A DNA stretch of 64,000 bases, from NCBI GenBank assembly GCA_964106915.2, contig OZ066920.1. The stretch is one strand, 5' to 3'. Position numbers and translations under genes: made by a program. Origin of the DNA: Podarcis gaigeae. Lineage: Eukaryota. Position 1 is the stretch's first letter, and the number at the start of each line of letters is the position of its first letter. The notes under the pieces were generated by a model. That model was not told where the DNA came from. It did no database searches and was given only the letters and a program-made list of their open reading frames with translations. This document shows positions 42,098 to 42,208 of this stretch, piece by piece.

Positions 42098-42208
42098 ATA
42101 TTTCAGCCCATTATTTTGCTCATCCTCATTTTAGTTCTGTTCTCTTCACTTTCTTATGCCACTGCATTTAAGTTGGTTTTTCTGTTCATGCTTTTCTTTG
42201 CCTTGTAG
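42098..42208 (+). CDS. MTCL1: Putative alternative terminal exon encoding a hydrophobic membrane anchor ([36 protein letters not shown])
   Basis: About 30-nt pyrimidine tract ending ttttcag|ATA; phase 0, compatible with exon C; 36 codons then TAG; close to the recalled SOGA3 C-terminus [36 protein letters not shown]. Confidence 0.78.

Follow-up and report, generated by a model that had tools for sequence, protein, structure and literature searches.

An upstream acceptor in MTCL1 and a candidate membrane-anchored isoform in the lizard Podarcis gaigeae

Two acceptors behind exon C of MTCL1

The window analyzed here is a 64,000-nucleotide (nt) stretch of contig OZ066920.1 (assembly GCA_964106915.2) from the lizard Podarcis gaigeae, without any N, and its element of interest lies at positions 42098-42208, where a preliminary description had proposed a hidden transmembrane exon of MTCL1. 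The host gene is MTCL1, as named there: exon C is 92% identical to Varanus MTCL1 and ~56% to SOGA3, and in a tree of exon C the lizard sequence falls within the MTCL1 group (support 91/99). A long gecko MTCL1 was placed by tblastn on ten exons spanning the window, and PF14818 was detected in a long MTCL1 ortholog; database searches were done per exon rather than with a joined spliced model. Exon C (40034-41359, plus strand, like all features below) is the shared upstream exon; it encodes two SOGA coiled-coil repeats (Pfam SOGA, PF11365, E = 3.6e-67), has an RNA contig depth of 103, and ends at a phase-0 donor GT at 41360. Its end corresponds to residue 923 of 2011 in a gecko ortholog, and a product tailed at this point retains ~46% of the protein.

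Two acceptors follow this donor. The upstream one (AG at 42096-42097) opens onto 36 codons and a TAG stop (42206-42208), in phase with exon C and beginning with ATA at 42098, which encode a hydrophobic C-terminal tail with two predicted short helices. The second in-frame AG (42105-42106) that had been pointed out is likewise present in the sequence, and the relatives' RNA described below holds no joint to it (42107). The downstream, long-form acceptor (AG at 42302-42303) has few pyrimidines directly before it and opens exon D (42304-42459), which supplies 52 codons in the long form and 3' untranslated region (UTR) in the tail form; both forms share the donor at 42460. The intervening 95-nt spacer (42209-42303) is 3' UTR in the tail form and intron end in the long form. 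Exon E (52277-52369), the first exon after the premature stop, was placed by tblastn of long MTCL1 and by an RNA loose end at 42459 that matches 52277 exactly. MTCL1 models from ptarmigan, goose, and skink omit exon D, so that the donor at 41360 can lead to the tail, to D, or to E, and some automated mammalian models (P0041, P0042) apparently read exon D frame-shifted. An out-of-frame ATG (42291-42293), 13 nt upstream of the long-form acceptor, is kept in lizard, pheasant, and mammal; in the lizard its frame closes after 38 codons.

Use of both acceptors was seen in RNA from relatives of the lizard, not from the species itself. In X1, a contig set from a related species whose RNA nature is evident from GT..AG joints and from an exon depth of 103 against an intron depth of at most 5, the 41359-42098 joint has a depth of 77, and the 41359-42304 joint, which yields the long form as previously proposed, has a depth of 50. 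Two raw reads with two starts cross the 41359-42098 joint in X21 (single-cell RNA, another species); junction coverage in X23 and X24, both bulk RNA runs, was too low to inform. The X1 contig covering tail and spacer (42091-42330, depth 52) merges into exon D at a depth of 106.5, and 52 plus 50 match the 106 on exon D. The tail form makes up 49 to 61% of the two junction classes (tail and D, with C-to-E skipping outside the count), a share drawn from one contig set of unspecified tissue with rough depths and short reads that do not phase distant exons.

The preliminary description had called the segment a terminal exon, which the transcripts contradict. In X1, the exon D contig continues without a branch to 52277, the start of exon E, and the stretch from 42537 to ~43500 has zero depth. 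No AATAAA or ATTAAA occurs between the tail stop and the donor (42209-42459), and no conservation was found beyond the exon D donor; an alternative last exon with its own poly(A) site was rejected on these counts. One donor joined to two acceptors with a common downstream donor is an alternative 3' splice site pair, the tail acceptor lengthening exon D by 206 nt to an internal exon of 362 nt. Because transcripts continue through D and splice to E, the tail stop, which lies 251 nt before the D/E junction and is followed by at least six junctions in the window, is premature by the exon-junction rule (>50-55 nt). By established rules the tail form should undergo nonsense-mediated mRNA decay (NMD), yet it holds the share given above in X1.

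The tail peptide across genes and species

The tail has a grand average of hydropathy (GRAVY) of 2.29 and a single Lys, in keeping with its earlier characterization, and a 19-residue Kyte-Doolittle peak of 2.5; one local hydropathy calculation set 20 exon C residues ahead of it. Among the 820 AG-started, stop-free 36-codon frames of the window, it is the sole frame reaching GRAVY 2.2. The hydrophobic segment sits at the extreme C terminus of the tail form, as in tail-anchored proteins. AlphaFold predicts two tail helices, 14 and 16 residues long and separated by a Ser-Leu-Ser break (predicted local distance difference test [pLDDT] 86-93), in a single-sequence model of a natural gecko tailed protein standing in for the lizard product. 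Both predicted helices are short for a full membrane span, so that a hairpin would be as likely as a classic tail anchor. The peptide has no match in Pfam or the ESM Atlas.

A search with the 36 residues identified 13 cluster representatives at 81 to 89% identity, the tail being their C terminus in every case. A search with the lamprey tail gave 583 proteins, and nearly all among the matches listed are named SOGA3/MTCL3; 114 of its 116 new proteins terminate exactly in the tail peptide. SOGA3/MTCL3 models mostly end in a near-identical peptide, then, as the preliminary description had stated. MTCL2 is absent among the matches listed (best 120 of ~590 per search), and the tail is recorded for MTCL1, MTCL3, and the lamprey gene only. 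At the genomic level, the frame is conserved in other MTCL1 loci: in a pheasant (L002) and a mammal (L005) the tail is flanked by exon C and the long-form acceptor, as in the lizard, and in a teleost contig (L007) it lies just 5' of an exon D matching fish MTCL1. Lamprey (L001) carries it at the same intron position, in one gene annotated both as an 861-residue tailed protein and as a 1526-residue long protein. Since this single gene has both a tailed and a long annotation, the two-acceptor switch is ancestral; of the proposed "ancestral family-wide switch" the first part holds, and the second extends to MTCL1, MTCL3, and the lamprey gene only. The lamprey gene, on a long branch, received no placement among the paralogs in the tree. 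At a Leuciscus locus, no tail match was found within 8 kb after exon C, and exon D was likewise not found there.

Predicted isoforms that include the tail, a point left open before, do exist. Automated MTCL1 models carry it at the exact junction in gecko (KAL8182304), turkey (UniRef G1NAD0), and one fish, and some 30 bird "SOGA2/MTCL1 partial" entries carry a mis-joined version; no RefSeq XP_ MTCL1 isoform with the tail occurs among the matches listed (best 120 of ~590 per search). Mammal-like MTCL1 tails (L005 8131-8238; P0003, P0006) show a Ser-to-Pro change, a terminal Trp, and the loss of one codon, and are more diverged than those of birds and the lizard.

Exon C homology clearly points to SOGA3 as a further MTCL1 paralog; MTCL1 has been described as having a single vertebrate paralog, MTCL2 (bioRxiv 10.1101/2021.09.07.459224). 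SOGA3/MTCL3 (PF11365) shares exon C with MTCL1 and carries the 36-residue tail at the corresponding boundary; beyond the tail stop it still has an acceptor and a donor. It differs from MTCL1 in that the tail form is the main annotated protein and the downstream exon is degenerate, whereas both forms are intact in MTCL1. The degenerate acceptor and donor lie at 26847-27110 in L004 and 1298-1510 in L006, and the SOGA3 stop may therefore also belong to an exon that is not the last; the downstream acceptor of SOGA3 is the one used in RefSeq model P0136. L006, tried as an MTCL2 candidate, was rejected as SOGA3-type. SOGA3 protein has been detected by proteomics of mouse brain and of human cells, where it is listed as membrane. 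Squamates have two MTCL3 genes (P0137 and P0231 of Elgaria; L004), apparently on one chromosome, with exon C branches of only 0.03 to 0.04 substitutions per site after the fork between them. The C-terminal half of SOGA3 apparently corresponds to a separate gene, KIAA0408; no C-terminal-half homology was found within 10 kb downstream of Elgaria SOGA3.

The arrangement of MTCL3 and KIAA0408 as a split locus would suit an account in which the MTCL1 tail form is bicistronic or gives a separate product, either a 36-residue microprotein from the first ATG of the exon or a re-initiated C-terminal half resembling KIAA0408. Most orthologs do begin the tail exon with ATG, an in-frame ATG is found at 42322 in lizard and mammal, and re-initiation would also account for escape from NMD. 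However, this lizard opens the exon with ATA and the mammal with ATC, and the ATG at 42322 lacks a purine at -3 and is missing in the pheasant. We regard such a product as very unlikely.

Selection on the tail and its intronic surroundings

Between lizard MTCL1 and lizard SOGA3, the proportions of synonymous (pS) and nonsynonymous (pN) differences in the tail are 0.97 and 0.10, and 25 of the 34 differences fall at third positions (P = 6e-17); synonymous sites are saturated between the paralogs, and 30 to 33 of the 36 residues are kept. Neither of the remaining frames is biased in this way, and both are interrupted by stops. The ratio of nonsynonymous to synonymous substitution rates (dN/dS) in the tail is 0.05 against lamprey and 0.20 against mammal (P = 0.003). 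Changes assigned to the MTCL1 branch itself comprise 10 synonymous and 3 nonsynonymous in the pheasant (P = 8e-5) and 10 and 7 in the lizard (P = 0.002), and indels keep the frame, with 3 nt lost in the mammal and two residues gained in a fish. These comparisons indicate that the tail codons are under purifying selection on the protein, as had been supposed for the 36 codons from their near identity to SOGA3.

Nucleotide conservation in this region is also high. A block at 41795-42470, spanning both acceptors, is 88% identical to pheasant over 684 nt, against 77 to 78% in exon C, and lizard-pheasant pS is 0.12 in the tail versus 0.78 in exon C. The reading frame could in principle be a by-product of a long conserved pyrimidine tract and regulatory sequence serving the weak downstream acceptor, since pyrimidine-rich codons spell Phe, Leu, Ser, and Ile; the low pS and the scarcity of pyrimidines directly before the AG at 42302 fit such an origin. 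It is largely refuted by the third-position bias of the differences from SOGA3, and the tail junction is in real use and the same peptide ends SOGA3, which leaves a by-product extremely unlikely.

The block includes a conserved intronic element (42008-42062), a putative splicing regulator identified by sequence comparison, which contains UGCAUG (42037-42042) and a YCAY cluster. This ~50-nt element, 35 to 90 nt 5' of the tail acceptor, is near-identical in lizard, pheasant, and teleost and is retained in a mammal; each of the five MTCL1-type and lamprey loci has UGCAUG, which both SOGA3 loci compared lack. The YCAY cluster is marginal alone (background fraction 0.04-0.28), and a small hairpin over the UGCAUG element, for which no compensatory pairs were found, was not supported. 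UGCAUG is the RBFOX-type motif and YCAY the NOVA-type motif, and, judging from motif position and the RNA maps of these factors, RBFOX- or NOVA-type factors on the element would probably have a repressive effect on the tail acceptor in neurons and muscle.

A different function has also been considered for the upstream acceptor. Poison sites, which couple alternative splicing to NMD, lie in ultraconserved elements of genes for SR (serine/arginine-rich) proteins and PTBP2, with a premature stop before junctions and intronic and synonymous ultraconservation. The acceptor might act mainly as such a switch, lowering MTCL1 output in some tissues, with the tail an ancestral leftover whose protein role now resides in SOGA3. 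The stop 251 nt before a junction, the ultraconservation at the nucleotide level typical of poison exons, the conserved UGCAUG, and the lack of a tailed RefSeq XP_ MTCL1 isoform among the matches listed all accord with this, as do the raised gene-level Mtcl1 in Upf2-null embryos (PMC9687065) and the listing of an MTCL3-KIAA0408 read-through as an NMD candidate (10.1101/2025.08.01.668123). A poison site needs only a stop, however, not 36 kept residues, and the frame-keeping indels, the conservative hydrophobic changes, and the synonymous excess on the MTCL1 branch itself speak for a retained peptide; the 49 to 61% steady-state share in X1 is likewise hard to square with mRNA destined for decay. 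In contrast to the SR and PTBP2 sites, the MTCL1 tail is under strong amino acid selection and is abundant at steady state in one informative sample. A mainly poison role is, in our judgment, unlikely, although it and a membrane isoform are compatible and can both hold, in different tissues.

Elsewhere in the window, a 78-nt in-frame cassette exon with a tandem (NAGNAG) acceptor (36824-36901) lies between exons B and C and is kept in pheasant; both B-to-C and B2-to-C loose ends are present in the X1 RNA contigs. A compound (TG)10(GA)21 microsatellite (39852-39912) lies ~120 nt 5' of the exon C acceptor. The large A-B intron holds open reading frames at 19146-19622 and 21860-23620 that resemble what we take to be decayed reverse transcriptase pieces of CR1-type and BovB/RTE-type long interspersed nuclear elements.

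A soluble or membrane-anchored MTCL1

These observations are best read as a regulated switch that yields a membrane-anchored MTCL1 of half length and is tuned in part by NMD, and we consider it reasonably probable that such a membrane-anchored isoform is real. Use of the acceptor at 42304, or skipping of exon D, gives the known long soluble protein with its C-terminal microtubule-stabilizing domain; use of the acceptor at 42098 adds 36 hydrophobic codons and a stop to the N-terminal coiled-coil half, a build like that of SOGA3/MTCL3. The tailed protein is presumably produced, and its tail would insert into a membrane, either as a short helical hairpin or as a tail anchor, leaving the coiled coil on the cytosolic side; NMD would trim the tail mRNA without removing it. 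MTCL1 forms parallel coiled-coil dimers, and its C-terminal domain stabilizes microtubules (PMC5546597). Because of this parallel dimerization, the tailed form could hold either itself or full-length MTCL1 and microtubules at the endoplasmic reticulum (ER) or Golgi without stabilizing the microtubules. Exons beyond the window decide whether the tailed form has the N-terminal microtubule-binding domain.

Several points weigh against this interpretation. The tail stop lies well upstream of the D/E junction and of the junctions that follow, and Mtcl1 rises at the gene level in Upf2-null blastocysts (PMC9687065). The tail share rests on a single contig set from a related species. The low lizard-pheasant pS indicates that part of the conservation acts on the RNA, and the greater drift of mammalian tails may reflect relaxed constraint in mammals.

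A splice switch between soluble and membrane forms is of a known kind. CUX1/CASP, the nesprin KASH isoforms, and immunoglobulin mu each yield soluble and C-terminally anchored proteins from one gene by alternative RNA processing, CASP itself being a coiled coil with a C-terminal anchor. Those genes use true alternative last exons, whereas the MTCL1 tail stop is, unusually, in an internal exon and the remaining coding sequence becomes spliced 3' UTR. For MTCL1 such a switch is undescribed in the literature searched, where the MTCL papers make no mention of a transmembrane isoform; a SOGA2 splice event has been validated, the text not specifying which (PMC5426614). The tail form would come from the same gene as full-length MTCL1 (Sato 2013/2014; PMC5546597) and has the N-terminal coiled coils in common with it, and it differs in lacking PF14818 and the C-terminal microtubule-binding domain. 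Full-length MTCL1 has been described as reaching the Golgi via CLASP and AKAP450.

More tentatively, and with doubt prevailing, the ancestral vertebrate MTCL gene may have made both a soluble microtubule stabilizer and a membrane-inserted coiled-coil tether by one acceptor choice. MTCL1 would still do so, its tailed mRNA largely escaping NMD in spite of the many junctions after the stop and its tailed protein dimerizing with full-length MTCL1 to pin noncentrosomal microtubules directly to the ER or Golgi, and SOGA3 and KIAA0408 would be the two halves, fixed as separate genes after duplication. Work on MTCL1 has treated it as a soluble cross-linker that Golgi microtubules and the Purkinje axon initial segment require, with a membrane link considered indirect. 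If the membrane-anchored isoform is real, conserved and abundant as it is at the transcript level, it would add a direct membrane anchor that escapes any antibody, tag, or rescue construct directed to the C-terminal half, and truncating variants after exon C would be read differently. SOGA3, itself unstudied, would gain a model open to testing, and the tailed mRNA would be a natural example of a transcript that is abundant although its stop is premature and many junctions follow.
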